The position numbers and the translations under genes were made by a program. DNA of 64,000 nucleotides from Calcarisporiella thermophila CBS 279.70. Its lineage: Eukaryota > Fungi > Calcarisporiellomycota. Shown piece by piece: positions 1,520 through 50,264 of the stretch. The notes under the pieces are model-generated. The model was not told the DNA's origin. It did no database searches and saw nothing but the letters and a program-made list of their open reading frames with translations. Position 1 is the first letter of the stretch, and every line of letters begins with the position of its first letter. Where the stretch lies: the NCBI RefSeq assembly GCF_041956535.1, contig NW_027192222.1, positions 1 to 64,000 on the forward strand, given 5' to 3'.

Positions 1520-4025
1520 ATGCAATTTGCAATATCAAGCAGCGAATTAGCGTTAAATATAGCGTCCATCGTTTGCGGATTGCTTATTATGATATTAGTT
1601 GCTTGGCTTCGATACACCCAACCTCAAGTTACCAGGAGCATGTCGTTTAGACTCAGTTTTTGGATTGGTCTTGCCGACACTCTTTACCGTAGTTTTTATA
1701 TCTTGGGTGCAGCGTTCGATTTCCTTGATGTAGTTTTACCTAATCACATCTGGTTGTGTCGTATTATCTTCTGGTCTTATACATTTTTCCCTATGTGGTT
1801 TTCTCTGCTCACAGTCAGCATCGCATGTGATCTTCAACTCTCCGCATTCCACAAGCACATCAATATTGCTCGATTTCAGAAGTGGTATCTTCCTCTGTCT
1901 ACTATTATACCATTCGGTTTATCAACACCACAGTTATTCTATGGCAATGCATGGTGGAATGTAACTAGGGTATGCACAAACTCTCTTTTTGCTTCTTGAT
2001 CTACTTGGGGCAAACTATCAAAAATTCTTATTATACCTTATAATTTGCTGTATTATAGAAATACATCAGTACTGACTGGTCTCATAATTTCGAAGTGGCC
2101 ATGCTGGTGTTATTCAACCTGGTCGTGTTCAGCGGCATTCTCTATTCTTTCATTGTGATATTTATCTGCACAATCATGGTATTTCGTATAATTCTGAACT
2201 CAAAGGGAAAAAGAATCCAGCGTGCTGATCAAAATCAAAGCAGAGATCAACTAGTGATGATATCTATAATTAGACTACTTGGTTATCCACTCGTGCTAAT
2301 CTTAACCATGCCGCCTGAATGCATTATGGGTATCATATATATTTCTCAATTTCGTCGTACGCCTTTTGGTGAATCAACAGCAAGAGCAAAAGCCAGCTTG
2401 ACTGGAATGCAAGGAATTTTCAATTTCATTATCTTTCTATTTAATCCTACCTTCTCGGCTGCTCTTCGTGAATTTTCTTTCTTTAACTGGGGAAGGTCGC
2501 ATCATCAATCGCGTAGTATCTCAAATGCATCCACTAATTTGCATGGAGCCCTCACACTTCTCCATCAGGAGCTGGGAGTAAGAAAGAAATCCTTTGGTTC
2601 AATGAAACAACAAACAGAAGAGGTGCCTTTAACTATCATGTGGAGAATCAGATTTTTAAATCATTTCAATCAGCAGTGCAACAAAAAGTCACCAATATCA
2701 GAAACAAGTTCTCAGTGGCAGAAAAATGACACAATTTCAGAGAGTTGCCGTCAATATCAAACAGTATTCTCACCAACCGATGTACCAGATCAACAGAATA
2801 GCGTTGATGGAAACAAGTGGATATTGGGGAGACAGTTTTGGGATAGTAAAGGTGCAGTAAGTCAATCGCTAATTAGTGTAGGAAAATGATGATAACATGA
2901 TATTATGACAGGGACACATTACATTTTGCCAAATGATGAAAAAGAGATGGATCGGTTGATAAATCAACACTATTTTCTCCAGTAATTTAATCTAAGCTAA
3001 TGCTACAAAAATACACACTTACGCTATTCTTCTGGTTTTTAGACACCTTTTTTCCAATTGCAATTTCCTTTCTCCGGTGCAATCTATTTTAAGTAGCGGA
3101 ACCACGGTGTTGGATATTGGGTGAGTATTTCTGCTAAGCACAATTTTAATCCAATTTTCAATATCCCCTACTGCTTGCGCTCATTAGCTGCGGACCAGGA
3201 ACGTGGATCATGGAAATGGCAGTGGAATATCCTAGAACCAAATTCTATGGCATTGATATGTTTAAAATGTTTCCGTCGCATATTGTCCCAGCGAACTGCT
3301 ATTTTCAAACTGCAAATGCTCTCGAGGCGTTGCCATATTCGGATCAGAGTTTTGGATTCGTGTTCATTCGAGATTTGGGCCTAGCAGTATATCAGAAAGA
3401 ATGGCCAAGTTTGATTACGGAAGTCCTGAGAGTCTTAAAACCTGGAGGTTACTTGGAGTTAGTTGAAACTGGTAGGAGTTATTTGATATTTTAAATTAAG
3501 TATTTCGATGAAATAGCACTAAATCAACATTGCAGATTATTTTGTTCAGGGTGAAGGAGAAGCATTTGGAAAGATTTCCAACGGATGTTAGTGCTAGACG
3601 TTTTTATTACATTCGTGTCTAAAATAATTGGAGCTCTTTTTTGTTTCATTTTAGTGTACAATGCCTTACGTGCACGCGATATCCATCCTTCTTGGACACA
3701 AAAGATTGGCGATTATCTAAACACTATGCATATGGAGGACGTCAATTCATTTCCCCAGTCCTTTCCAGTAGGTAAATTAGCTGGAAAAATAGAGAAACTT
3801 GGACTTGATACCTGGATGCAATTCTTAATTGCATTGCGGCCACATCTAGCTCAAGTGATGTATATTAGCGGTGAAGAATATGACGAGTTATTAAGAGGTG
3901 TGTATCAAGAATTACTTGAGAATGGCGTTCATATCAAAGTAATATGCACATACGGGAGAAAGCCACCACAGATTGGGCATGAGATGGAGAATGTAGATTG
4001 TATAAAGTTGTGTTCAGATAAGTAG
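1520..4025 (+). CDS. 7TM (GPCR-like) receptor fused to a LaeA-like class I SAM-dependent methyltransferase; manual model join(1520..1969,2059..2851,2912..2981,3043..3120,3188..3471,3536..3586,3655..4025), 698 aa
   Basis: Seven hydrophobic segments with SFRLSFWIGL, RLLGYP and GIFNFIIFLFNP motifs. GT..AG introns join in compatible phase to GRQFWDSKGTHYILPNDEKEMDRLINQHYFL, VLDIGCGPGTWIMEMA (SAM motif I), LPYSDQSF and RVLKPGGYLELVE. Exon lengths sum to 2097 nt (699 codons). Confidence 0.75.
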
Positions 4026-4792: not shown

Positions 4793-5860
4793 TTAACATT
4801 TTCTCCATCGCAGATGGTAGATTTGCTGAATCTTGCCATCGATGGTATCAGTGGTAAGCAAACCAGTAGCTTTGATTAAAAGCAGACATAGGTAGGCATT
4901 AGTTTAATATTATATATACATAGGATAAATTTTATCCATAGATTTTAGCTTACCAGTCTTTGAAGCGCTTGAATCGGCAGTAATGCGTATATTTGTGTTA
5001 ATATTGACATTACGCGTTGCATTGCATGATGACCAAACAGTAGATTCGAATGGAATTTTGTCCTCAATTAAATAGTTTTTATCATAGGGTCCGTTGAATC
5101 CACTTCGAACTGTATACTGGGGAGCAGAGCCTAGTTGACGGTGAAAATTTGAGTTCGCATATTTTATCTCCAACACTAAACTTATCCAACAACCCATATT
5201 GGTAGACAAATTCTTACCAGAGAAATAATAAGTGCTTGACTGTGCGCCATGCACACCACGATCCATACGTGCGTATCCACGATATATTGCAGATGCTGAA
5301 ATATGCAGGAATTGTATACAATTGCGCTCTTTTAGTCAACCAAATGATGTTATAAATGTGTGCGAAATATAACCCACCAACAGAATATTGCCAGCCTTGA
5401 GGGACGTGAAGATCGATCGAGAGCTGGCAGAACTTTCGATTTTCCACAGGCTTAATATTAGGGCCATACTGAGCTATATACTTGTTGAAGATAAGGGTGA
5501 AGACGGTTGCGTCACCTATATGAGCATTGACGTCAATAACCAAAGGTTAAAACTGATATCTTGTAGAAAGAGCGTATAAATATTTCAAAAGGAATGCATA
5601 CGAGACAAAATCTCGGTAACACTCTTGGCAGGACAACCATCTCCGTTGTATTTAATATCTGTTGTTGAACAATGAAACGTTATTTTATATAAATCAAATT
5701 TATTCTGAAAATATTTCTGGAAATGTCTAGTATCGTTACCTCGGACATAGACCTTATTTGGATCAGGATTATCGCGTTCTTGACGTTTAACGCTGCCTAA
5801 AGCAAAAATAGAAAAGATAGCGAAGTATGCAATGGTCGTAATAAGAGAGAATTTCAACAT
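4793..5860 (-). CDS. Secreted DUF4360-family protein (multi-exon)
   Basis: Signal peptide MLKFSLITTIAYFAIFSIFALG, then YNGDGCP, ENRKFCQLSIDLHVPQGWQYSV, DYRGYA, VWSSC and a terminal YHLRWRKC*, typical of DUF4360. Confidence 0.85.
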
Positions 5861-8800
5861 GGCTCTTAAGTTGAGGATGTAAAAAGTTAGAATGAAGAGG
5901 AAAATTTTGCTTGAAGATTTTCAATTTATATAGCAAAAAATAATGGCTGATTTATGCTTTTCAGTTAATCTCGTGCTTTTAATTATGCCTTTCCCTGTAG
6001 TGGCTTCAGTCATTAAAAGAATCACCTAATGTATGATCACAGATCAATTGGATGGGAGCCATTTTCTATTGGAAGCTTCTATTTGCGTTTTATTATCGAA
6101 CCAATTTTATTTGCATTATGTTAGATATATCTTTAACCTCGCTTAGGTAAGTTTGAGAAAAAGAATTACAGTCAATTTAATGAAATCTTCATATTTCTAG
6201 ATTCTTGCCTTATTCAGCTTTCACAAGATTCTTCTCTTTGAAAATTCTTGTTTTAACATAATTTGCTTTAAAAAAAAATATAATTCAATCTTGATTACGG
6301 AAGGAATATCGCATGCTTTATCATGGTTTGAAACTTCTAGCACCACCCGCCACCAGATTAAATGATCTCTTCATTTAATTATATTGGAATATTAAACTAA
6401 GATTTTGTTCGTACACCTGTGGCGGTTATATTGTTTGAAGAGAATTAAGTTAATTTTACTAATGAGATTCTTGAATTACAGTTATTTTCTCACTCAAACC
6501 CGGTCACTTCAATATGCAATTTTCGTGGGAACCGAGGGCTGAACCTCTAAGTGGCTACCAATTGAATCAAGTTCTCTCTGAAAAAGGATTGTATAAGCCA
6601 AAAAAAATTATGCTTAAGATAACTTGAATAGAATGTATGAAATGTAGTGATCTTACTACATAAAATATTTTTGGTAATGATTTAAACATAATACGCTAAC
6701 ATACAGTACTTGATCCAACATGATTTTAGATAATAATTTGGGAGAAAACAGAATGATATTGCAATAAATTGCTATTAAATTAATTATCCCGCATCAATAA
6801 CAATTTGTATAAACATATGTTACTAATTTTACCTCAAGCTTTACACTTCATATTCTCTAATATAATAGCAAAACCAAATTCCCATTCTTTTGTATCTAAG
6901 TAAGAATACCATCTCAAAGAGAGATGGTGTAATAAACCAAAGCAATTTAGTGAATGTTATTCATACAATCCTATGATAAGTGTTTATTTCGTTGTAATAA
7001 AAATGTCATTGATGCTGTATGAAATTCAGTATGAGTAGTGGATTTAGGGTGTTAACCCAATATCTGCAAGTTGAAAAGTTTTTTACAGTAGTATCTATTT
7101 ATATAAAACTTGGTCTTTCTTAGCAAATCTGTTTGGGTTTCGTGCGAAAAAATTTATGAATTCACTTTATGATATATAAACTTCCTAACCAAACTTGCTT
7201 TGTTTATAGTCCAAAGAAATTAATATGATTTATTATTAGATAGGTCGAAATTCACCAAACACGCTAAATGATATCGTGTTTAACAAATAGTAAAAACGTG
7301 GAGAATGCGCTACATCAAGTATAGTCGAATATATTTTTTTAGCATCAAAATTGAATTGACCAAGCGCTATAAACTCGATTACCCACGCAGGTGAAATGAT
7401 CAAGATAACAGTTAAATGTAAAAGATTCCGAATCACTGACACTATAGCATGTTTAAGCTGTTCTATATCAATCTATGAATCAAGTACGGTCTTTAGAGCA
7501 CAATAATATGTCAACAACGTAACGATAAGGTAGTATTATACACTTGATTTAATAATAATGCACAATATGACCATGATCAATTCAAATTGAAATCGTTGAT
7601 ATAATGTATACAATGTAATATTATATGTATATTTTAGCGCATTTAAAAGTCTTTTTTGATTTGATGGTAAACTTATCCACAATAGGTAAGTTTTCGATAG
7701 GGATTACTCCTTTTTATTTGAGTGTGTATTTTTTGATGCAACACATTGACTAGCACTGTCCAGCACTAAATTTGCAATGTATGCTCAATTGCCTTAGGCT
7801 GGATCAAGCTAAATGAAAAGCATCTCATAAGTCACCAAATACTCCAGGAATTACAATTTGAATTGATGATTACATCTCCATGAAAATAACGATATATTGC
7901 AATTTTCGATAATATAAATATAATGTATAACATATTGTTTCTATATTATTGTAACACAGATTTAACAATAATTTTTTAACGAGCAAGCGATGAAAAGGTA
8001 TTGGAATTGGTTTTGAAATTCTCTTATATGTTTAATCCATACATTTTTTTCCTTCATAAGAGAAGGCATTCACTATATACTTAATATCCTAGTAGAATAT
8101 TTGTATTAAACAACAATGATATTAGAACCAGTATAGTAGGCTTCTTAATCAACGTTGTACCCTGCTAGATTCACCTTTGTCTATATATTTTTCATTGCGA
8201 TGCACATACTATACTCTAATAACACGTTAAGAATTATCTTCCCACTATATACGAACTTGCTGATATCATTACTCTTAGCAAAATATCCATAGATATCCTC
8301 TCCCAATTGCAACTATCGCAATTTATGCAAAGGCTTTTATGTTCTAGATTGCAACTTTGTTTTTTTTACAAAGGAAACTAAAATTTAAACCAGCCAATAT
8401 AGTCCCATGACTCGAATATAGCAGTTCTCTTTGGAAAGCAACCAATATCTACACAAAACCTCACATAAATTCTCTCATTCTGGTTACACATGTATATGAT
8501 GCAATAGAGTTTCCTGTGTGTAACATTTTAAGAAAAATATTAATTGGAGGTTGCTTTTCCTGTGTTCGAATTGCTCTTTTCAAATTGTACACAATAGGAA
8601 AATTTAAAATTCGTTTCCCAAGCAAAATATCAACACTTATACTAAAACTATAGAATCAAAATTTGCCAAGTTATAAATAAGCTTGACCAGTTTCCATTGA
8701 ATTCGAAACACTTTACAAAACCACGAACCCCCTTTCATATAATTATTGATTGATTTTTATTTTTATTATTTTTGTAAGTTGAGACCTTGCGTCTAAACAT

Positions 8801-8924: not shown

Positions 8925-10037
8925 ATGCTTCTGTCGCTTGCACATCTCATCCTATGCATTATTTCGGCATGTTGCGATTTGGTTATAATGGCCATTGTAT
9001 TGTGGAGCCGTATTTCCCAACCATGCAAAGCCAGTATACTTTCATTCAGATTATCATTCTGGATCGGTCTTGCCAACATGTTTTGGTGCATCCAGTATAT
9101 TATACTGAGATCAGATGAAATCGTTCACTCACTTGAGGGTCAACTTGAATGGTTTATTAGAGTCATGGCTTTTGCACAGACACTTTTTCCCGTGTGGATA
9201 GCCATGTTAATATTCTGCATTGTATTTGATGTACACCTGACTGTTATTCACGAATTCCACAATATGAGTCGATACTACCGTTGGTACGCTCTGACTACCT
9301 TTTTATTCGCTTTCATATTCAACATACCTAACGCCATCGTAATCCATCCCGAGTTAATCCACTGGGATTCGGCGCATGGTTGGCCTATCCAAGTTCCAGC
9401 AATTCAATACATTTTCACCGTGACCATATGGATAGGGGGCTCCATCTTGTATTCAGTTGCTGTGATTTTATTGACCCTTCACAGAATGTCGACTAGTATT
9501 AACCGCTTGAAGAAGTTGGATGAGATAAATGAGGCAAAGCGCCTCAAAGAAAAGCGACTCTTCAACACTCTTCTTCGCATTCTCCTGTACCCAGTGGTAT
9601 TTATAGTGACCCAGACCTCCGGACTTGTTGCTATGTTGACTCAGATTGTTACCCGGGACGCGCATTCCTCGACTTTGTATGTGCTTTTCAACATTGATGC
9701 TACACTGCTTGGATTGAGTGGGGTGCTTAATCTGATGGCATTTTTAATCAATCCAAGTACCTTTCGATTCCTTAGTGGAATTCCATGGTTGGCCAATTAT
9801 TTTCCCTTCAAGAAGAAACCAGAAAATTCACCTTACGTTTTTGGTAAACCTGAACAGCGGCGCCCGGTGCTCCCAGTTGAGGACGAGATCTCTTTCGATA
9901 TTACACAAAAGGTGCGTCAGATATTGTACCAGGAAGATCCAGATTACATCGACACGCCAACTGCTTCCATCAAAGGAGTTGGTTCTTCTTCCCAAACATC
10001 CCAAAGAGAAGACCCATTTTTTCAACCCTTTCATTAG
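8925..10037 (+). CDS. 7TM GPCR-like protein, intronless paralogue 2
   Basis: 370-aa ORF with seven hydrophobic segments and the motifs SFRLSFWIGL, RILLYP and GVLNLMAFLINP shared with the other two copies. Confidence 0.85.
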   Translation: MLLSLAHLILCIISACCDLVIMAIVLWSRISQPCKASILSFRLSFWIGLANMFWCIQYIILRSDEIVHSLEGQLEWFIRVMAFAQTLFPVWIAMLIFCIVFDVHLTVIHEFHNMSRYYRWYALTTFLFAFIFNIPNAIVIHPELIHWDSAHGWPIQVPAIQYIFTVTIWIGGSILYSVAVILLTLHRMSTSINRLKKLDEINEAKRLKEKRLFNTLLRILLYPVVFIVTQTSGLVAMLTQIVTRDAHSSTLYVLFNIDATLLGLSGVLNLMAFLINPSTFRFLSGIPWLANYFPFKKKPENSPYVFGKPEQRRPVLPVEDEISFDITQKVRQILYQEDPDYIDTPTASIKGVGSSSQTSQREDPFFQPFH

Positions 10038-10999
10038 ATCAGTATTTTGTTTTTTTAGTGTATATTAGCGATTTACTCTAATTCAATTTTTTTTTCTCAT
10101 GCACATAAATCTGGGTTGTTCCACTGTAATACTCTTTTTGTCTCACAATGCAAATGATGCGTAGACTTAGAATTCCTTCCAGTTTATGTTTAAGTGTTGG
10201 TACCTAAATAATTTGGTTCTCACTAATAAGTCCTCCACCAGAAGATTGAGTTTACATCAGCTTTTGTATTCAAATTTTATTTATGCATTGCGTTTACGTG
10301 ACTCCTCGGTACACTCTGTAGTCCAGAATGGAACATGACCTCGTCATCTATACAAGAAAGAAGATTTAGCATGTATGTTAGAGTCGAGAAAAATGGTTCG
10401 TCCTTAGCAACAGCACTACAAATGTTTTACAATCATCGATTTTACCCAGGCTGGCTTACTCTGGGCGCAGCGTCTATTTATTTCGGGATTGTTTTTTAAG
10501 ATTTTATATTAAACCATCAGTGTTTATTTTTTGAAGAAACTCCAGAATACACTATAGAGTTACACTCACTCAAAAGAACCAAATTCTTGGAGCACAATTT
10601 TATTCTCTTTATTCATTTTTGCGAAACTTTGAATATACTGATCGAATCATTTAGCTACGAGAGAGGAAACCATTCTCATACTGAAATCAATGATCGCAAT
10701 GAAGGAATCAGTACAGAATCCGAAGAGGATTTCAACCCCACCAATTGTGGTAGCATTCCGGTGCGTCACACCAGTTGCAGGAGTTCCTTGAATCGAGGTC
10801 GTAGCTTCCGTGCATAAACCTCCGATTCTGATATATTGTCAGTCGGTGATTGTGAAACGGATCTGCTGCATCGGGCATCTGCAAGCCACGACAGGATTTA
10901 ACTTGTCCCTTGTGGGCGTTAATATGCTCAAAGAGGACTTGCTTATTCAACAAAAACCATCCTCATTCCATTTTGCTCGATCCTCTCTCCCACAATCCA

Positions 11000-15279: not shown

Positions 15280-17702
15280 ATGAAAATCCTTTTTAGTTCT
15301 CTCCTCTTGGTCTCTGCTCTAGCCCTGTCGGCCGCTAAACCCTCAGAGGGCAGCAAACGTCTGCGCATCCAACCTTTTGGTCCAGACATATCCGATTCCC
15401 AAACTTACATCGTCGACTCCTCCTCAATACCCCAGGCTGACCTCAGCGGCTTTTCAAGAAAAAAACCCCTTGATATTGCCCGCGATTTTGCAAAGAGCCA
15501 TTTGACTAATTCCGATTTTGTCGTGAAGAACTCCTACAAATCCGACTTGAACGGGGTCACTCACGTCTACTTGAGACAGGTGGTGGAGGGCCTCGAGGTG
15601 ATTAATGGAGATATCAATGTCAATGTGGACGCCAAGGGCAACATCGTCTCCTACGGCAACTCTTTCTTCAAGGGAACCAAGGGCGATGAAAAAGGAAAAG
15701 GCTCCAAGCACAATCCCTTTACAAAGCGAGGTGCTATCGACCCACGAGAGGCTCTTCTCTCCCTTGCAAAACACATCAATGTGAAGGTGCCTCACCCTAA
15801 TCGCATCGAAGTGGAAGAGAGTGACTCTCTCAAGGGAGAATCGCAAACCGTCCTTACCAACGTGCCTTTTGCTGTGGATGGTAGCGAAGTTCCCGTACGA
15901 AAGGCTTTGATCCAAACGGAGGGAGGCCGCCAACTTCAACCGGTCTGGGAAATAATCGTAGAGATGGAGGAAAACTGGATCCAGTCTCATGTCCACGCTT
16001 ACACCGGAAAGGTCGTATCCGTTGTGGACTGGGTGTCCGATGCCACCTACAACGTATATCCAATGGGCATGAATGATCCTTCAGAGGGCCCGCGCAAAAA
16101 AGTCGAAGATCCGCATGACCTTACTGCCTCTCCCGATGGATGGCACACGCAGGGCTCTAAGAAGTTCCAGGTGACGGTCGGAAACAACGTCTATGCCCAG
16201 GAAAATCTCAAAGGCGATTTCAACTGGGAGGAAAAAGAGCGCCCGAATGGTGGTGAAAAGCTGAACTTCGACTTCCCGCTAGACTTGTCTCAGCACCCCA
16301 AGACATACATTAACGCATCCGTCACCAATCTCTTCTACTGGAATAACATTATGCATGATCTGTCTTATCGGTATGGTTTCAATGAGGCCGCCGGTAACTT
16401 CCAAGAGGACAATGGTGATCGCGGGGGTAAGGGCGGCGATGCGGTCATTGCAAATGCTCAGGATGGCGCCGGCTTCAATAACGCCAACTTTGCCACCCCG
16501 CCAGACGGTAGAAAGGGTAGGATGCGCATGTATGTGTTCAACTCATTCGATCCCAATCGAGATGGTGACTTGGAGGCGGATATCATGGTCCACGAGTATA
16601 CTCATGGTATTAGCAATCGACTCACTGGTGGGCCTGACAACGTAGCTTGTCTCCCATTCGGTGAAGCGAGAGGCATGGGTGAAGGTTGGGGCGATTTCAT
16701 TGCCGCTATTTTGCGCACAAAGCCCCACCACAACCGTACCGTCGAGTTTACCGAGGGTGAATATGTAGATGGCAAGAACATTCGCAGATATCCATACTCC
16801 ACTAGCATGACGACCAACCCAGAGACCTATGGCACAATGAACAACCCCGGTTATGAAGATGAGCACGACAAGGGACCAGTCTGGGCTAATATGCTCTACG
16901 AAGGTAAATTGAGGTTTTTTCTCACGTTCTGTTGATCTACTTGATTTGGCTTTGGCGGCTCTTATTACAAAACTCGTGAGAAAGCACTTCTAACGGATGA
17001 CAAATCGCTTTGATAGTGTACTGGAATCTCGTCGATGAGCACGGCTTCAATCCAAAATGGTTCCCCCCACACACCACGGACGCCAAGAAGCTCCGCGAAT
17101 ATATCACTAGCCACGGCAACACACTTATGCTGCAACTTGTCCTCGACGGCATGAAGCTACAGCCTTGTCAACCGACTTTCATCACTGCTCGTGATGCAAT
17201 TTTGCAAGCAGAGAAGCTCCTGACGGACGGGAAGAATGAGTGTGCCATCTGGCGTGGATTCGCCAAGCGCGGGTTGGGTGTGGATGCAAAATTGATTGAA
17301 AACAACCCCCTCGGCAGTGGAAAACGTGAAGAGAGCTTCAAGATCCCCGAGAAATGCGAGAAAGCCCCCGAGGATCCCATTAAAGAGTGCCTGAAAAAAC
17401 TGTGCGGCAAAACGTCCGAGAAGGACCTGAAGCAATGTGCGAAGAAGAAATGCGGACATGAGTCGAGCGAAGCAGAGAAGCAGTGCATGAAGAAGAAGTG
17501 CAAGCATAAGACGGGCAAAGCCAAAGAGAAATGTCTCAAGAAGAATTGCGAGAAGGAGGCCGGAAATGCGATGAAGCAGTGTTTGCAAAAGAAGTGCAAA
17601 CGCAACACGGAAAAACCTGCTAACCAATGCAAGAAGAAGAAATGCGGCCATCTGTCGGGCAAGGCCGCCAAAAAATGTCTAAAACAGTGCCATCAGCACT
17701 AA
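15280..17702 (+). CDS. Fungalysin (M36) extracellular metalloprotease with FTP propeptide and C-terminal Cys/Lys repeat tail; intron 16904..17016
   Basis: Signal peptide, GVTHVYLRQ (FTP), NLFYWNN, GFNEAAGNFQ, NNANFATPPDG, zinc motif HEYTH, GMGEGWGD, PCQPTFITARDAILQA and IWRGFAKRGLG. Confidence 0.95.
17388..17690 (+). repeat. Coding repeat: seven ~16-aa C-x4-C-x10 Lys-rich units
   Basis: CLKKLC, CAKKKC, CMKKKC, CLKKNC, CLQKKC, CKKKKC and CLKQC, each separated by exactly 10 residues. Confidence 0.9.
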
Positions 17703-19044: not shown

Positions 19045-19998
19045 TTAATTCATCCCCTCCAACTCCTTCAACCCAGCCGCTTTGAGGCTCTTGAGAGTAG
19101 AAACAGCACTGTGCAAGTACTGTGTTTCCTCTTCATCCAAGTTGAGGTCAATGATTCGGTGGATGCCATTTCGACTCAACACGGCTGGATTGGATATGTA
19201 ACAACCGTTCGCGGGAACGTACACCGAGAGCGGGATAACCGAATGAGAATCTTTAATGATAAATTCTACTATTCGAGCTACACACACGGCGACGCCAAAG
19301 TAGGTCGCTCCTTTGCACTCGATGATTTCGTAGGCCTTGTTCTTGATTTTCTCCGAATGCTTTTTTCTATCCAGTTTTTCCATCCCCGGGTATTTTAGCA
19401 TCGGGATGCCTCCAACTGAGGCCGCATGCCACGCCACAAATTGGCTGTCCCCATGCATTCCCACGACGTAGCAATGGAGAGAGCTATGATTGACTTGCAA
19501 TTCACGGGCTAGTTCCGTACGCAAGCGATTGGTGTCAAGAAATGTGCCTGAGCCAAATATCTGCTCGCGGCGGAATCCGTCCGCAACTGCAAGATCGGAA
19601 AAGTACTCGGTCAGGATATCGACCGGATTAGAAACGACCAGCACTATCGCGTTTGGATTGATCGGCTTCATGTTTTTGTATATTGACTGAATAATTTTGA
19701 AATTGCGGCCAACAAGCTGCTCTCGTGGCTCTCCCGGGCGTTGCGCTGCGCCAGCTGTGATGACTATAATATCCGCTTGGGATGCATCCTTAAAATTACC
19801 CTTGCAAATTCGTGTACATGAGCGGAATGTTGCGTCCTCCAGGTCCATCCATTCGCCAAACAGCCGGGTCTGAGCTTGCTCAATATCTGCATCAACCACA
19901 ATGACCTCGACGGACAAATTACGGAGAATCATAGTAAAAGCTGAGCAAGCCCCAACTTTTCCTGCGGCACCGATGACTGCGACTTTTGTGAGGCCCAT
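19045..19998 (-). CDS. ldh: L-lactate dehydrogenase (NAD-dependent), intronless
   Basis: KVAVIGAAGKVG Rossmann motif, ITAGAAQRPGE (Gln at the LDH specificity position), VSNPVD, GSGTFLDTNR, HGDSQ and KGATYFG. Confidence 0.92.
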   Translation of the reverse strand: MGLTKVAVIGAAGKVGACSAFTMILRNLSVEVIVVDADIEQAQTRLFGEWMDLEDATFRSCTRICKGNFKDASQADIIVITAGAAQRPGEPREQLVGRNFKIIQSIYKNMKPINPNAIVLVVSNPVDILTEYFSDLAVADGFRREQIFGSGTFLDTNRLRTELARELQVNHSSLHCYVVGMHGDSQFVAWHAASVGGIPMLKYPGMEKLDRKKHSEKIKNKAYEIIECKGATYFGVAVCVARIVEFIIKDSHSVIPLSVYVPANGCYISNPAVLSRNGIHRIIDLNLDEEETQYLHSAVSTLKSLKAAGLKELEGMN

Positions 19999-22110: not shown

Positions 22111-23160
22111 ATGCACCAACGCATGATTGTCCCCACCTATATCATCGTCATCAATGTCCTTTCGATCCTTTGCGGACTTTCCATGATGGCGCTCGTCTCC
22201 TGGCTCCGCAGGAGGAAGCCCGATACCACGGACACGGCATCGTTCAAGCTTAGCTTCTGGATCGGCCTCGTCAACGCCTTGTGGAGCACCCACTTCCTCC
22301 TTAAAAGCTCTGGCGACATCCTCTATTCTATGGCCGAGACTGATGCGTGGTGGATTCGGATGCTCGCGTGGTTATCGTGTCTTTTCTATGTATGGGACAC
22401 TGCATTGAGCGCATGTGTAGCATTCAACCTGCAGCTCTCCTTCATCCACCACCGTACCAATCTGAAGCGCATTCAGGCTTGGTACGCGCCAGGCTCCTTT
22501 CTCTTCTCCATTTGCGTGACTTTCCCCTGGCTCATCAAGCCAACCTGCTTTAACAAGGCAGGCAATGCCTTCCAAAGCGAATTGTCCAAGGAAGAGTTCG
22601 TCCTGTTCTATCTGTTTTTCAAAGATTTATGGGTGGGCATAGGGATCCTCTATTCCACGGCCGTCATCGTGTTGGTGCTCTTCCACGTGGCTCGTGAGGC
22701 GCGAAGGTTGAGGGAGTTGAAGAACGACATGCTATATGCCAAGGAGCTGAAGTTCACCCAATCGGTGGTGTGGATTCTACTCTATCCCGCAGTGCTCATT
22801 GTGACGCACACATTTGGCATCATCAAAGATTTCAGCATCAGAAATTATGATTGGGACACTCGCTCCACGCTTAGGATGGTGGATAAAACCATGATCAGCT
22901 CAGTCGGCATCCTCAATTTCATTGTGTTTCTTCTCAATCCAGCATTTCGCCGCTCTCTCGATAATATCCCTTGGCTTTCCAAGTTCTTGCGGTTATCATC
23001 TCCAAACACCCATGTTCCAACAAGCAATGGCATTGATAGATCCGTGTCTCGGAGGGAACCCATTGCGTCCGAATTTCATTCAAAGGCTTGGCAAGACTTC
23101 TTCCTGGAAATTGAAAGACAAGTGAATAGTGATCCAGCCCTCGCAAAACCACAACCATAG
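22111..23160 (+). CDS. 7TM GPCR-like protein, intronless paralogue 3
   Basis: 349-aa ORF with seven hydrophobic segments and the motifs SFKLSFWIGL, ILLYP and GILNFIVFLLNP. Confidence 0.85.
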   Translation: MHQRMIVPTYIIVINVLSILCGLSMMALVSWLRRRKPDTTDTASFKLSFWIGLVNALWSTHFLLKSSGDILYSMAETDAWWIRMLAWLSCLFYVWDTALSACVAFNLQLSFIHHRTNLKRIQAWYAPGSFLFSICVTFPWLIKPTCFNKAGNAFQSELSKEEFVLFYLFFKDLWVGIGILYSTAVIVLVLFHVAREARRLRELKNDMLYAKELKFTQSVVWILLYPAVLIVTHTFGIIKDFSIRNYDWDTRSTLRMVDKTMISSVGILNFIVFLLNPAFRRSLDNIPWLSKFLRLSSPNTHVPTSNGIDRSVSRREPIASEFHSKAWQDFFLEIERQVNSDPALAKPQP

Positions 23161-27755: not shown

Positions 27756-29392
27756 ATGCTAGGCAACAAAATTCGAGGAGCATGGAACGACTACGTCGCC
27801 TACATTCATGCCCCCAACAATGTTCAAGGTCCAATGCGGCCTTTGGTCAAGCCTTATCGTGTGGTTGCGAAGACTAACTTGACATTATGGTAGGCGCCAA
27901 CTTATTCCATAGCTTCTTCGATAGAAGATTTCTCAATATTCTTGATTCAGGATCTTCATTGGCATGTTAATCGGCATTCTTATCGGCGCTGTGAATCCCC
28001 AGGCTGGAATTACAATTGGACCTTTTGGAACCGCATTCATTCGTATGATTCAGACCCTGATGGTGCCTCTTATTTTCTCCACACTCGTAGTCGGGTAATT
28101 ATTGTTTTGCAAAGCTGATTTCTGATCCCGTGTGAAATGATTCTAACCCCCTTTTCCCGACGCATCATAGTATTGCTGGCCATGGGGATGATCTTGTTCG
28201 TATCGGAAGGCTCGCCTTGAAGTCAATTATCTACTTCCTTATCGTAACCACCCTCGCTCTTGCCGTTGGGTTAGTCATGGTCAACATCTGTCGCCCTGGA
28301 GATGGTATCGATTTGACCAACGTGAGCGTCTCGAAACAGGTCGAAGATTTTAAGAACAAATCAATTACGTGGGAGGACGAGTTCAACAAAATCATCCCAA
28401 AGTCCTTTTTCCAGGCCGCCTCAGATAATGAAGTGCTCTCGATTGTGTTTTGCGCCGTCATGTTTTCCGTGGGTATTATCAAGGTGGATCAGCATAGCAA
28501 ACGTACCATGCTTGCATTCTGCGATAGCCTGTCCAACATAATGTTCAAGGTCGTAGCGCTCGTGATGAACTACGCCCCCATCGGTATTGCTGCCGCTCTC
28601 GCTGCAACGGTTGGTAAAAACGGTGTCGGAGTGCTTATCAATTTGGGCAAACTGGTTGGAACGCTCTACGGCGCCCTCGCGATCTTCGTGTTGGTCATTT
28701 TCGTCCCCATCATCCTTGTACTCCGCATTCCATTTGTGGGCTTCTTAAAACACGTGGGTCTCCCTTGGTTGATTGCGTTCTCAACCGCCTCCTCCGAGTC
28801 GGCTCTGCCCCGTGCCATGGAGAACATGCAGAAGTTTGGCGTCCCCAAGCGAATTGTCGCCTTCGTCATTCCTTGTGGTTACTCATTCAACTTGGATGGC
28901 ACCACGCTTTACCTATCTCTTGCCGCCATTTTCTGTGCGCAGGCCGGTGGCATGAACTTGGATATCGGCCGCCAGCTCGCCATCCTTGGTACTCTCATCC
29001 TCTCCTCAAAGGGTGTGGCGGCCATTCCTCGTGCTTCCATGGTGGTGCTAGCCGGCACGGTGACGAGCTACGGTCTCCCCCAGTCAGCTGTCACATTAAT
29101 TCTAGGAGTGGACGCCCTCATGGACATGGCTCGTACCTCGGTGAATGTGTTTGGAAACTGCCTTGCCTGCGTTGTCATGAGCAAATGGGAGGGTGTGTTC
29201 CGAGGTGAAGAATGGCAAGAGGAGATGCGCCAGCTTGAATTCCAGGCACAGAGAGAACTGCAAGACGATCTGGAGGCCAACAACGAGAAGGTAAACCCGG
29301 ACAACAAGGACGGCGTCAGTGTATCCTATCGTGAGCATGCAGAATACCCCCGCCCCGTCGACATTGAAGAGAGACAAGACAGGCACCCTTAG
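27756..29392 (+). CDS. Dicarboxylate/amino acid:cation symporter (DAACS, GltP/DctA-like); introns ~27889..27950 and ~28095..28170
   Basis: FIRMIQTLMVPLIFSTLVVG|IAGHGDD, AFSTASSESALP, VIPCGYSFNLDGT, SKGVAAIPRAS and DMARTSVNVFGN. Confidence 0.93.
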
Positions 29393-41127: not shown

Positions 41128-42870
41128 TTAAGATAAATCGTCCTCGCAGTCTCCTTCTTCCAACTCCTCCTCAGTGAACCATATATGTGGATCGCTTATC
41201 CCGTTTTGTAGGCGCAAACTGGAGTATATATTCACCAGTTTGAAGAGCTTTGGATTTTTCGAACGATTCCATATTCCACTGTGTATGAATCCCAAGTCCG
41301 ACCAGATTCGCTCTGATACAGCTGCGGTTGCAGACATTGAGAGTACGGTGATGGCAAGCTTCGCTAACTCTGGAGAGAGTGACGTATGTACTTTCCACCA
41401 CAATATGGGATCCATTTCTTTGGCAGCAGCCCAAATTAGTGGGGAGTCAAACGGTGCCGATCTCGAATTAAACAATAGTAATTCGGTATATATATCACAT
41501 GCTTCGTCTTGTGGATATCTCTCGCTTAGGAATTGCTCAATGTCTCCAAGCGACACATCTTTAAAATTAAACGCTGAGCGATTAGGGTCGAGTACCTGAG
41601 CTATCGTCATCACAGGCTTCTTGATAAAATTGAAACGAGCAGCAATCTTTTCTATCAAGTCTTCGCTCAGATTGCCGGGTTGTTGCTCAGCCATTCTCAT
41701 TAATGAATGGTAGTGTTGATTGACTATTGAAAGGCGGGGAAAGTCTCTTTCAAGATCAACAACTACATCTGCAATTGGTTTAGTAAAGTTGCGCAATGCT
41801 TCCACTTTATCTCACCACGTATCTTGAAGCAAACAGCGTAGTTCAGATGAAGTGAGCTCCAAAGCTGCCGTTTGGAGAGGTGTTCGCGAGGACAAAATAG
41901 ATTCCAGGCATTTTGAGTAAGAGAGCCAGCGAGCCTCTACTGGAAGAGTAAGAGCAATTTCATGACCAAGCTTCTCTCTTTGAATCTTCTTAAGAATGGA
42001 ATAAGGAATCGGGTGATTTATAAACCACTTCGCTATTGCTTTCACTTCTCCAACTATGGTCACCGTCCAGGGTAGATTTAAAACATCTTTAAGAAGTAAT
42101 TTGGTGGCATGTAAAGCGCATCCATAACATACGAGGTTGCTAAACTCCTTTTCAAGGATACTCCAGGCTATTTTCATAGTTGCCGTGTTATCCGTCACTA
42201 CAGCTTTCACCTTATTAGGGCCAATTCTCCTGATAGTATTTGATATTTTATTTGCAGCGTATTCTCCTGTATATTGATTAGCATCTGTAAATATAGCGTC
42301 GTAGAAGAAGGGCTTAGGCGTAGTTATTACAAATATCATTACAACTTCTCCTCTGATACTTGTCGAATCGGTCAAAAGACATATATTCTCGCTATTTTCT
42401 AAACTTTGATCGAGCTCTTGTTTGACGTCTCCGAATATTTTGGACAAAATAGAGTCCGCAAGTCGACTTCGTGAAATAGGATTGTAGCCAGGTCTTATTT
42501 TCTTCAAAAATTGTCGAAAATATTCATTTTCAACAAAGTCGAACGCTACACCTTCACTAAATAAAGCTTTTGCGAGCAATTCATCGACCTCAGTTATATC
42601 TTCCTCAGCAGCTTCAGGTAAAATGCGCTTATGCTTTCCTAGGTTTATGGTCGTCGAACTAGAAGGAATTGTGTCTGATCTTGCCAACTCGGAAATGTTA
42701 TAATTTGTCCCTGGGTAGCGACATCTTAATAAATGCATTCTGATTTGGTTCGCACCTTCTGTCCAAAACATTGTACCGCAGTTATTACAACGGACGAGTG
42801 AAGATTGCTCGCCCTGTTTAATTATATCGACGGATTCCAAGATGTTATTTTTTTCATTATCCATTTTCAA
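41128..42870 (-). mobile_element. hAT-superfamily transposase (BED-like Zn finger, DUF659 core, hATC dimerisation domain) interrupted by one in-frame TGA at 41812..41814
   Basis: VRCNNC..MHLLRC, VVTDNTATMKIAW, CALHATKLLLKD, PVEARW, DPILWWK and PELAKLAITVLSMSATAAVSERIWS. The two listed ORFs are in the same frame. Confidence 0.9.
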
Positions 42871-47523: not shown

Positions 47524-50264
47524 TTATGAGGTCGTTGCATTATCTACACTTTCATAGTCATTAACTGAGAGGCTCTCTCCTGCATCCCACTCATCTTCCC
47601 AGTCTCTATCCATCCATTCATCTCTCATTGCCTCGTAGTTATTGGTATCATGAATTTCAATAACCTCTGGTAAATCTCCGCCTTTCTCAGGAAGAATCTT
47701 TCGTGGTTTTCCCAAAATTCTCTTTCTCTGCTCGCGCCGTGGAATGTTCGTCAAACGCCAAAACCGAATAAATTGTGGCGAAAGAGATATATTAACTCTT
47801 CTCCACAGCTTTTGTTCTGCACATACATCGCGCCAAAAATCAAGCATGTCGATATTCCTAGTAAGTCGCCATTCATCGATTGCTCGCCGCTTACGAATAT
47901 GCCAGAGATTTTGTCTCTTGGTCTCAACATCTTCACCACTGTCCTCATAATACTCATATCCTTCTATCTCAAATTCAGGGACCTGTTGAAAACCAAGTTC
48001 TCTCCATAAGTCTTTTCCTATTGTTGCCCCAGAATTATCATGATAGACTGACAAATCATCTTCCTTCTCATCGTCACCCTCTTCCATAACTCCATCTGTA
48101 TCACTTGAAGATTCATTTTCGGCACGCCTTCTCTTCCGCTCTTCATGCTCGCTATCCTCGCTGTCATCTTCCTCCGTTGAGCCCATGGCAATACCATTGA
48201 TTTCCATTTCGTTGTCACTTTCACGCCTTTCCTCATGCAAGTTGCGCTTTCGTTTGTGCTTACCAATTTCTGCATTAATATTTGTATTTTCGATTGACCA
48301 TTGGCTTTTTTCCTCACTAAAGCGTGCCCATGGGCCACAAGTGATGTAGCCATCTCGGCGAATAAAAGGTCTGTTGAGACGAGTTGGCATCTCACGAAAA
48401 TATTCCTTTAGAGATAAAGATTTGCGCTCGTGTCGGGAAATTGCTGCCGTCACATCAGAGAGTTCAATCAAATGTTCATACTTTCCAACCTCGTCAGCGT
48501 CCATTAATTTAAATCCTTGACGGTGCTGTGATCCTTGGCCATTTTCACCACTAGATATATTCATGGCATCAGTCGAGTTTGCTAGAGCAGGAGGGGATGT
48601 GGATTCCGAGCAAGTATTTTGAGTGGAAATCGCAACATCCTCTTCCTCTTCTGAACCAAGTATCCCTTCCCACTCAGATCCATACTCGCTCCCCTCTTTC
48701 AGAGGAGCATTGGAGTCGGAAATATCTTCTTCATCGCTTGAATTGGTATCTACACGGACGCTGCTCGGTGGAAAGCGCCGGCGTCGTTCCTCAGCAAGAA
48801 AAATAGCATAGCCAAGGACATCATAGAGCCAATCGTGGAGGATAGCACCAAAATAAATGACATTATCCTTGAAAAATTGGGTTGAAGGACGCTGGACGTA
48901 AAATCTAGATAAATAAGATGTATGCGATAATCGATTGAATAATTAGATTTTTTTTAATAACCCAAGGTTACTACATACATTTCCGAAAAGGATTTCAGTC
49001 TACGCAATTTTATGAGATCAAAATATTTCTGATTCAAAGGAGCCGGATTTATCTCTTCAACAGGATCATTTTTCAATTCATGGTGTTCAAGCAGAGCACT
49101 AAGATGCTCGCTTTCGCGGTTCTCGAACTCAAGCCATGCGTCTGATACTTCTCGTGCAGCCGGAATGTCGCTCAAGGGTATAGCTATATATAAAAGCGAA
49201 GGTTGAAGGAGATTTTTAATACTCTCAATAGATAACTTAGCCATCACACAAAAAATTAGCTTACGCTCGAATCCTTTGGACAGCTTTTGCAGCCAACGTA
49301 AATAAAGCTCGACTTGTATATCATTCTTTGTAGGAACCGATTTGGCTATGGCTCGCAGGTTTCGCTTACCAAATCGTCCAAGGGCTTCAAAAAACTGCTC
49401 CTTCTCAATTGCAGTCCAGTAGACTCCCTCAACAATCGAGTCAGATAAGCAATTGCTCGATCTAGAGTGGTGAAGTGTTTGAGATTCTTCATGGAATATT
49501 ATTCCATAGTCGCGCGTATGCTGGATGCACCAGCGAATGGAAGGAACTCGAGTACGAATTATGCGGCGCCATGTCGGTAATTGGGTCGTCTGCTGAAATT
49601 CGACGGATGTTCGTCTTCGTATCTTATTTGTGGTTGCCTCGAGTTGAGGAGTTGGCTTTGATCGTATTTTACGCCTCCCACTTTGACCCTCTCCTTCATA
49701 ACCGCTGGTATTTTCTCCTCTCATTTCGCGGGCAGGCCCTTCCCCGCTGCTCTCATTTCTTTGCCTTGCCACCGCAAGCAATTTTTGTCTTCTCAACCTG
49801 AGCTGATTTTGTCTTTCCAAAGTGCGCTGCATTTTTTCTCTCTGGGCTGGAGGTAATGCTTCAATTCGCTTCAATCGTTGCATCTTACGCAATCTTCTAT
49901 CCTCCTCCTTAAGCTGTCGAATTTTAAGCATCCTCTGATCATGTTCATGTCTCTCTTCAGGCGTCATGCGATTTCGTTCTTCACGCTGACGTCTTTTCGT
50001 CTCCCGTATTTTTAACAGTCGTAACTGTTCACTCTCATTAAGTGTTGCTATTTCTGCAAGTCTCTGTTCCTCTGTCATTTTGTTCTTTCGAATATAATAT
50101 CGTCGACATTTATCACTATTCTTGATCTTTCTTATCCGCTCTTCCTCAGGCAATTGTTCGAGCTCGCGCTGTTTTTCAGCTAGGAACCGCTCCCTGGCTT
50201 TCGCTCGATAGATCTTCTTTCTCTCATATCTTCTCTTTCGCCTCGCAATTTCAACTTCGTTCAT
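47524..50264 (-). CDS. Myb/SANT-domain protein, Rrn5-like (RNA Pol I upstream activation factor subunit)
   Basis: WTAIEKEQFFEALGRFGKRNLRAIAKSVPTKNDIQVELYL and IPLSDIPAAREVSDAWLEFE; introns near 49190-49264 and 48906-48978. Confidence 0.7.

Follow-up and report, generated by a model that had tools for sequence, protein, structure and literature searches.

Fusions of a seven-transmembrane (7TM) domain with a cytoplasmic signalling domain are represented in fungi by the 7TM-RGS protein GprK. The plant protein RGS1 is likewise a 7TM-RGS protein (PMC6033456). In the GPCR-bigrams of oomycetes and other protists, a receptor of the G-protein-coupled class (GPCR) is joined to a PIPK, INPP, AC, PDE or TKL domain (van den Hoogen and Govers, PMC6033456). 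Aspergillus nidulans has a 7TM-methyltransferase, NHMT (AN4663), which localizes to the endoplasmic reticulum and occurs as a single copy in Pezizomycotina (bioRxiv 10.1101/2022.10.03.510680), and the VapA-VipC-VapB system tethers LaeA-like methyltransferases to the membrane under signal control without fusion (PMC4299510). Here, a locus of the thermophilic, early-diverging fungus Calcarisporiella thermophila was analyzed, located at positions 1520-4025 on the forward strand of the first 64,000 nucleotides of contig NW_027192222.1 (this whole stretch is referred to as the window) and thus near the contig start. It was confirmed at the genome level, from the DNA sequence, as a receptor-methyltransferase fusion. 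The alignments and structure models support a one-protein architecture of 7TM domain, cytoplasmic linker and S-adenosylmethionine (SAM) methyltransferase. The genome has been published, and the main text of that paper does not mention GPCRs (PMC11393059).

The architecture resembles the GPCR-bigrams in having an N-terminal GPCR and a C-terminal intracellular catalytic domain in one chain (here on genomic evidence), in being a multi-copy family and in the coexistence of free enzyme forms. PIP kinases, cyclases and PDEs, named as GPCR partners in a first-pass annotation of the window, are indeed described bigram types (PMC6033456). The outputs known for enzyme-fused GPCRs concern phospholipids, cyclic nucleotides and kinases. 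In contrast, the effector found here is of the Methyltransf_25/23 type, outside the listed PIPK, INPP, AC, PDE and TKL, and its host is a true fungus, so far one species, with a lineage-specific receptor family, which argues for an origin independent of the bigrams. By analogy, the best reading is that the family works like a GPCR-bigram with a methyltransferase as a new effector type.

With the 7TM-RGS proteins the fusion shares a 7TM domain joined to a cytoplasmic signalling domain, whereas RGS is a non-catalytic GTPase accelerator and the module fused here is an enzyme. In NHMT, too, a soluble methyltransferase follows a seven-helix membrane domain at the N-terminus. However, its 7TM domain is without GPCR similarity, compared to a GPCR fold here, and its enzyme is spermidine-synthase/METTL13-like, compared to Methyltransf_25/23 without any spermidine-synthase match among the Pfam hits. 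In addition, a disordered linker of approximately 120 amino acids (aa) separates the domains here. Because of its non-GPCR membrane domain and spermidine-synthase-like enzyme, NHMT is an analogue only. LaeA and the LaeA-like enzymes share the class I SAM domain with the opening motif GR.[YF]...Y.LP.D..E..RL, but LaeA and VipC-VapB are soluble, act in the nucleus and with velvet proteins and are tethered non-covalently by a zinc-finger protein, and none of them is an integral membrane receptor fusion. Velvet interaction and nuclear or nucleo-cytoplasmic action appear unlikely for an uncleaved membrane protein. The remark of the first-pass annotation that it knew of no described GPCR-methyltransferase fusion agrees with the literature searched (most subscription papers lay outside the search), in which none was found.

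The gene model comprises seven exons with 698 stop-free codons, followed by a stop codon at 4023-4025. All six introns are of the GT-AG type with a length of 60-89 nucleotides (nt), and none of the splice sites is disrupted. Searches with the spliced model were run one exon at a time, and structures were predicted for natural paralogs, namely P0005 (704 aa, annotated as a single protein) and the receptor-only P0001. The features of the locus, including the transmembrane helices (TM1-TM7), are as follows.

1520-1969, + strand: exon 1, 150 aa, short N-terminus and TM1-TM4; 70% identity to P0005 residues 1-147.
About 1538-1618, 1640-1711, 1748-1849 and 1886-1939, + strand: TM1-TM4 in exon 1, mapped 1:1 from the paralog model.
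1970-2058, + strand: intron 1, 89 nt, phase 0, in extracellular loop 2.
2059-2851, + strand: exon 2, with TM5-TM7, helix 8, the linker and the first half of the methyltransferase opening motif in a single open frame.
About 2083-2211, 2227-2343 and 2362-2439, + strand: TM5-TM7 in exon 2, with the NP motif at 2443.
2449-2817, + strand: linker, 123 aa, cytoplasmic, predicted to be disordered, with homology among the fused paralogs and no conserved Met.
2509-2535, + strand: Ser/Thr cluster S.SIS.AST directly after helix 8, aligned in 7/7 subclade copies; candidate phosphorylation sites.
2644-2655, + strand: RIRF, an RVxF-type motif, in the same alignment column in 7/7 subclade copies.
2852-2911, + strand: intron 2 at the receptor-methyltransferase junction, 60 nt, phase 1, donor GTGCAG.
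2912-2981, + strand: exon 3, with the Y.LPND..E..RL..QH motif; 77% identity to P0005.
2982-3042, + strand: intron 3, 61 nt, phase 2, position conserved.
3043-3120, + strand: exon 4, the 3' end of which encodes VLDI(G), the first half of SAM-binding motif I (3107-3120).
3121-3187, + strand: intron 4, 67 nt, phase 2, interrupting motif I, position conserved.
3188-3471, + strand: exon 5, Rossmann core (CGPG, acidic motif II GID, LKPGG); 59% identity to P0005.
3472-3535, + strand: intron 5, 64 nt, phase 1, position conserved.
3536-3586, + strand: exon 6, 17 codons.
3587-3654, + strand: intron 6, 68 nt, phase 1, position conserved.
3655-4025, + strand: exon 7, C-terminal methyltransferase lobe up to YGRKP and a short tail; 58% identity to P0005.

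All six introns match P0005 in codon and phase, including the 60-nt junction intron and the four further phase-compatible introns that had been proposed downstream of it. The site of intron 1 is common to P0005, P0017, P0023, P0007 and the public model P0004. For intron 2, codon and phase are identical in P0005, P0008, P0010, P0017, P0022, P0023, P0025 and P0049, and all intact fused copies as well as the solo enzyme P0025 have the five enzyme introns in common. Since the intron positions match those of the paralogs, the junction intron at 2852 is located at a conserved place.

The frame of exon 2 is open from 2059 to 2886 and, as noted before, runs without a stop from TM5-TM7 into the methyltransferase motif. 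For the 117 linker codons tested, the probability of a stop-free run by chance was 1.4e-4 at the intergenic stop rate and 3.6e-4 for the shuffled linker, and the remaining two frames of this stretch contain 4 and 7 stops. The linker had been described as approximately 130 aa long and rich in Ser and Gln. Its length was found to be 123 aa between the NP motif of TM7 and the W of the opening motif, with a moderate content of both residues only (16 S and 12 Q of 117). The opening motif, previously assigned to the receptor exon, is split by the intron: W..GR.F (2818-2838) is indeed encoded in exon 2, whereas Y.LPND is encoded in exon 3.

Using exon 2 as a phmmer query, proteins of 704, 764, 743 and 454 aa were matched including the receptor part, all of them with a methyltransferase, all "uncharacterized" and all from C. 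thermophila. A search with the enzyme region identified further copies of 674 and 528 aa. Four paralogs (704, 764, 743 and 674 aa) are annotated as full-length fusions, and for two short models an unannotated exon 1 could be located upstream. At the DNA level, seven loci including the window have a single frame without stops that covers TM7 and the enzyme opening motif, with 118-127 aa between the two. Identity with P0005 ranges between 38 and 62% in several copies. One decayed copy (L008 9932-12389) has a premature stop at 10756 between TM6 and TM7, another (L009 7088-9386) has a deletion and a linker stop at 7824, and L005 6261-8601 is a rearranged fusion remnant. The family shows birth and death; the copies seen comprise 7 intact ones and at least 2 that have decayed.

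For the analysis of selection, the window was compared with the three intact paralogs closest to it. Synonymous sites approach saturation (pS 0.70-0.88), and the nonsynonymous proportion (pN) was 0.19-0.33 in receptor exons 1 and 2 and 0.23-0.26 in enzyme exons 5 and 7 (exon 7: pS 0.74-0.83 versus pN 0.24-0.25). The dN/dS ratio of the linker was 0.27-0.65 where estimable, indicating a weaker constraint on a still coding sequence. From these alignments, purifying selection is shown for receptor, linker and enzyme (exons 1, 2, 5 and 7 tested). The in-frame fusion proposed in the first-pass annotation is thereby borne out by a stop-free frame, by introns matching P0005, by seven open linkers and by purifying selection.

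In the public annotation (MU987595.1), the locus is divided into two genes at 1640-2318 (164 aa) and 2780-4025 (260 aa). Two adjacent genes, a receptor and a methyltransferase with an accidental open frame between them, would agree with this split; gene callers appear to produce chimeras in related genomes (P0026), and a hypothetical intron at 2578-2651 would terminate the receptor at 2727. This explanation is highly improbable in view of seven open linkers that are homologous and under selection. An internal Met is not conserved in these linkers, and that of P0022 has none, which means that translation of the enzyme on its own cannot be the condition common to these copies. The linker intron from 2578 was dismissed, as none of the fused paralogs contains one, and the internal starts at 2602 and 2638 were rejected because they are not conserved; the independent methyltransferase ATG at 2602, previously considered as an alternative, is among them. 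By arithmetic, the length of 260 aa is consistent with the skipping of exons 3-4. Half of SAM-binding motif I would thereby be lost, and such an enzyme model is therefore not credible. The public receptor model contains a 95-nt intron within the receptor. Judged from the sequence comparison, the public split of the locus is probably wrong. The gene models of P0008, P0022, P0023 and P0047 likewise appear truncated or mis-spliced.

A competing splice donor, absent from the first-pass annotation, was detected at the junction. The consensus donor GTAAGT at 2857 is located 5 nt 3' of the in-frame donor GTGCAG, and its use is predicted to cause a frameshift with a stop at 2957 and a receptor-only product of 431 aa. 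A second GT 5 bases past the in-frame junction donor occurs in three copies (window, P0010 and P0017), by chance or as a shared alternative donor. Non-consensus donors are the rule among the paralogs at the junction intron. The family could thus be fused while the copy at this locus is mostly spliced at 2857, giving the 431-aa receptor or a degraded transcript. In line with this, the public model appears to use donor 2857, the consensus donor is only 5 nt away, and two other family copies have decayed. However, enzyme exons 5 and 7 of the locus are under purifying selection at saturated synonymous distance, with all splice sites intact, and the in-frame donor is located at a conserved codon after a good exonic AAG and is non-consensus in most paralogs as well. 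Predominant receptor-only splicing is therefore considered improbable; as alternative splicing, it could coexist with the preferred explanation of a tethered, receptor-controlled enzyme.

The AlphaFold model of P0005 contains seven long helices and a helix 8. The receptor-only paralog P0001 was modelled with a pTM of 0.84, and its top 50 PDB matches in Foldseek were all GPCRs (probability 1.0, 10-16% identity), with a TM-score of about 0.56-0.72 for 49 of the 50. The modelled receptor domain has a GPCR fold, and the seven helices, helix 8 and the superposition on solved GPCRs place the models in the GPCR superfamily by fold. The predicted 7TM topology of the first reading is thus reproduced in the paralog models. 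The loop charges of the window exons fit an N-out, C-in orientation, which places the enzyme in the cytoplasm; the position of the methyltransferase after TM7 on the cytoplasmic side, as suggested before, agrees with both loop charges and paralog models.

A Pfam search of the window exons assigned no family to the receptor exons and gave no Git3, GPR_Gpa2_C or Dicty_CAR match, so that the Git3/Dicty_CAR-like profile check proposed earlier returned nothing for the receptor. Among 18 relatives, GPR_Gpa2_C was found in 3, below its cut-off and with a best E of 0.0016. This weak similarity points to a possible distant kinship with fungal Gpr1-type receptors, and the family is not filed as a member. 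The receptor profile found no match among the PDB sequences, and the GPCR fold emerged from the fold search alone. Two intronless receptor-only paralogs are located in the window at 8925-10037 (+) and 22111-23160 (+). This pair groups with the divergent fusion P0010, and the former has a weak GPR_Gpa2_C match.

For the enzyme half, the Methyltransf_23/25 search suggested beforehand identified Methyltransf_25 in exon 5 with 41.9 bits (cut-off 27). The P0005 model has a C-terminal Rossmann methyltransferase domain. With a Rossmann fold, a DxGxG motif I and an acidic motif II, the enzyme is assigned by sequence and model to the class I SAM-dependent methyltransferases. The opening motif GR.[YF]...Y.LP.D..E..RL is present and common to the ascomycete protein P0056, and an ascomycete protein with this motif matches the enzyme profile with an E value of 2e-32. 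We take the motif to be a mark of LaeA/Llm proteins. The earlier designation "LaeA-like" holds for motifs and fold only. Fold matches of the enzyme comprise small-molecule and peptide methyltransferases at 13-21% identity, by which the substrate is not named.

None of the intact copies has lost motif I, acidic motif II or the opening motif, and the window enzyme deviates at 7 of 79 otherwise invariant columns, within the paralog range of 4-10. These observations bear on the idea that the enzyme binds SAM without a substrate in trans and acts as a SAM/S-adenosylhomocysteine sensor or scaffold tuning an ordinary G-protein-coupled receptor. LaeA itself has no known substrate except itself (PMC4299510), and the window copy has lost an otherwise invariant Asp. 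With intact motifs throughout the family and active methyltransferases as structural neighbours, a mere SAM scaffold is nevertheless the least probable of the functional alternatives discussed here.

The linker of P0005 has a pLDDT below 50 at residues 292-380, and the linkers of the fused copies are homologous. Based on the model, the linker is too long and disordered for a rigid receptor-enzyme coupling. By its consensus, the RIRF motif is of the PP1-docking RVxF type, and PP1 docking is its putative function. The motif was not found in P0010, P0017, 15 receptor-only tails or 13 N-termini of solo methyltransferases, and any RVxF match occurred in 5-18% of shuffled linkers. As the subclade copies are kin, retention of the motifs in 7/7 represents conservation and not seven independent events.

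Being disordered, conserved in length and equipped with a basic motif, the linker could also be the site of a signal-triggered cleavage that frees the methyltransferase to the cytosol or nucleus, as a one-chain counterpart of VapA-VipC-VapB. Membrane release of LaeA-like enzymes has been described (PMC4299510), and cleavage is among the proposed modes of bigram action (PMC6033456). However, no cleavage motif is conserved across all copies, and the free relatives have a permanent lipid-anchor signal rather than a nuclear one. Tether and release is therefore judged improbable.

In the enzyme tree, the solo P0025 clusters with the fused enzymes in a single clade (support 100/100) apart from Mucorales and Bifiguratus relatives. 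A single fused clade was not rejected (p-AU 0.30), and receptor and enzyme trees show the same branching of the fused copies. The tree rows for the window were single exons, and a second enzyme tree was calculated without the degenerate copies. The topologies fit one old fusion followed by duplication. Fused copies are intermingled with unfused ones in the receptor tree, and an unfused copy often has a fused neighbour in tandem (L002 4209-8491, L006 8233-12454 and L008 9932-18946). In these tandem pairs the receptor halves group together and the tails do not. The interleaving could result from gene conversion between neighbours or from repeated domain exchange. An origin of the receptor-only paralogs as truncated fusions was not supported, as their tails are unlike the linkers and alike among themselves.

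The solo MGxxxS methyltransferases of Mucoromycota (for example VTP21DRAFT_11468 and P0025) fall into the same clade, share five introns and 48-50% identity with the fused enzymes and would be the sister or the source of the enzyme. They differ in being free, with a predicted N-myristoylation signal, an extra upstream intron and no 7TM domain, and no characterization of them was found in the literature searched. The start MGxxxS/T, which we take to be the N-myristoylation consensus, was found in 21 of 28 solo relatives, and an upstream MG start in 6 of 8 fungal-like metagenome loci. Because the enzyme groups with a family mostly starting in such a signal, it probably worked at membranes already, with a lipid anchor whose place the receptor then took. 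Two solo methyltransferases with MGxxxS starts are located in tandem at L007 3219-6728, of which only P0025 is close to the fused enzymes. Bifiguratus adelaidae encodes P0024, with two tandem methyltransferase domains, and P0026, which appears to unite a methyltransferase and a small membrane domain with a ribosomal P protein and has the look of a chimera made by gene calling.

This ancestry raises the possibility that the 7TM domain is an anchor only, holding a constitutive methyltransferase at the membrane in place of the myristoyl group and without ligand control, as proposed for NHMT. The long disordered linker, the absence of a predicted interface, a probably lipid-anchored ancestor and the NHMT precedent are in line with it. 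A mere anchor would, however, not obviously need a whole GPCR fold under strong selection or a family diversified to 38-62% identity with P0005, and this explanation is regarded as unlikely.

We consider it moderately probable that receptor activation sets where and when the tethered methyltransferase acts on a membrane-proximal protein. The product would be a single membrane protein, in which a 7TM sensor of GPCR fold is linked through a disordered tether of about 120 aa on the cytoplasmic side to a class I SAM-dependent methyltransferase with motifs of the LaeA-like type. The fusion would have exchanged an N-myristoyl anchor for a receptor and thereby fixed the enzyme at the membrane patch of that receptor. 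An extracellular small ligand may switch the receptor, and coupling to the enzyme would be indirect and without a rigid interface, through the action of G-proteins or kinases, with a possible contribution of receptor clustering or endocytosis. The Ser/Thr cluster after helix 8 may be phosphorylated, which PP1 docked on the RVxF motif could reverse. As output, a protein close to the membrane would be methylated, for instance the receptor, a component of the G-protein pathway or the enzyme itself. The fusion protein would operate like an oomycete GPCR-bigram with methylation as output; the bigrams (PMC6033456) and the membrane-tethered VapA-VipC-VapB (PMC4299510) provide precedents for such logic. 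A more direct version, in which the tethered LaeA-type enzyme is turned on by an agonist bound to the GPCR fold, with no second messenger involved, is considered rather unlikely. If true, methylation would be a first-step transmembrane signal in a eukaryote, and a switchable system for trapping the substrate of LaeA-type enzymes would be available.

Several observations weigh against control of the enzyme by the receptor or against its realization at this locus. The receptor is below every Pfam GPCR cut-off and is without a DRY motif. The P0005 model has a pTM of 0.50, and the contact between receptor and enzyme is therefore not confident. The otherwise invariant Asp before beta-4 is a Gly in the window enzyme (nt 3354), the in-frame donor has to compete with the consensus out-of-frame donor at 2857, and the two fusions that diverge most lack both the RVxF and the Ser/Thr motif. 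Finally, all evidence is from one genome.

Concerning other species, all 20 phmmer matches of exon 2 among 1.84 billion representatives were from C. thermophila. The receptor was absent from the long methyltransferases of the other fungi examined, and metagenome scans identified neither a receptor relative nor a receptor adjoining any of 35 methyltransferase loci; these cross-species searches were word- or single-sequence-limited, and distant fusions could escape them. Within the searches made, the architecture appears so far to be Calcarisporiella-specific and is not widespread, a point on which the first-pass annotation had suggested a search of related genomes.

Further features of the window surround the locus. 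Two CCTAA units at 1-10 at the contig start are perhaps a telomere remnant and too short to judge. A convergent neighbour at 4793-5860 (-) is annotated as DUF4360, with no evidence of a link to the fusion. Further genes encode a fungalysin M36 protease at 15280-16935 (+), a lactate/malate dehydrogenase at 19045-19998 (-), a dicarboxylate symporter at 28217-29392 (+), a DUF659 protein at 41812-42870 (-) and a Myb-like protein at 48954-50264 (-). DUF659 proteins are often transposase-derived.

The architecture is easily missed in databases, as Pfam gives no hit for the receptor half and several of the gene models are incomplete or divided. The fusion would tie membrane sensing to methylation. 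For LaeA-type methyltransferases, the substrate question has been open since their discovery, with LaeA itself as the only substrate known for LaeA (PMC4299510). With such an enzyme attached to a receptor, a target close to the membrane is suggested, for which proximity labelling and activation-dependent methyl-proteomics would be feasible. The large and apparently unstudied group of Mucoromycota methyltransferases with myristoylation signals suggests that membrane-side methylation may be common in these fungi.

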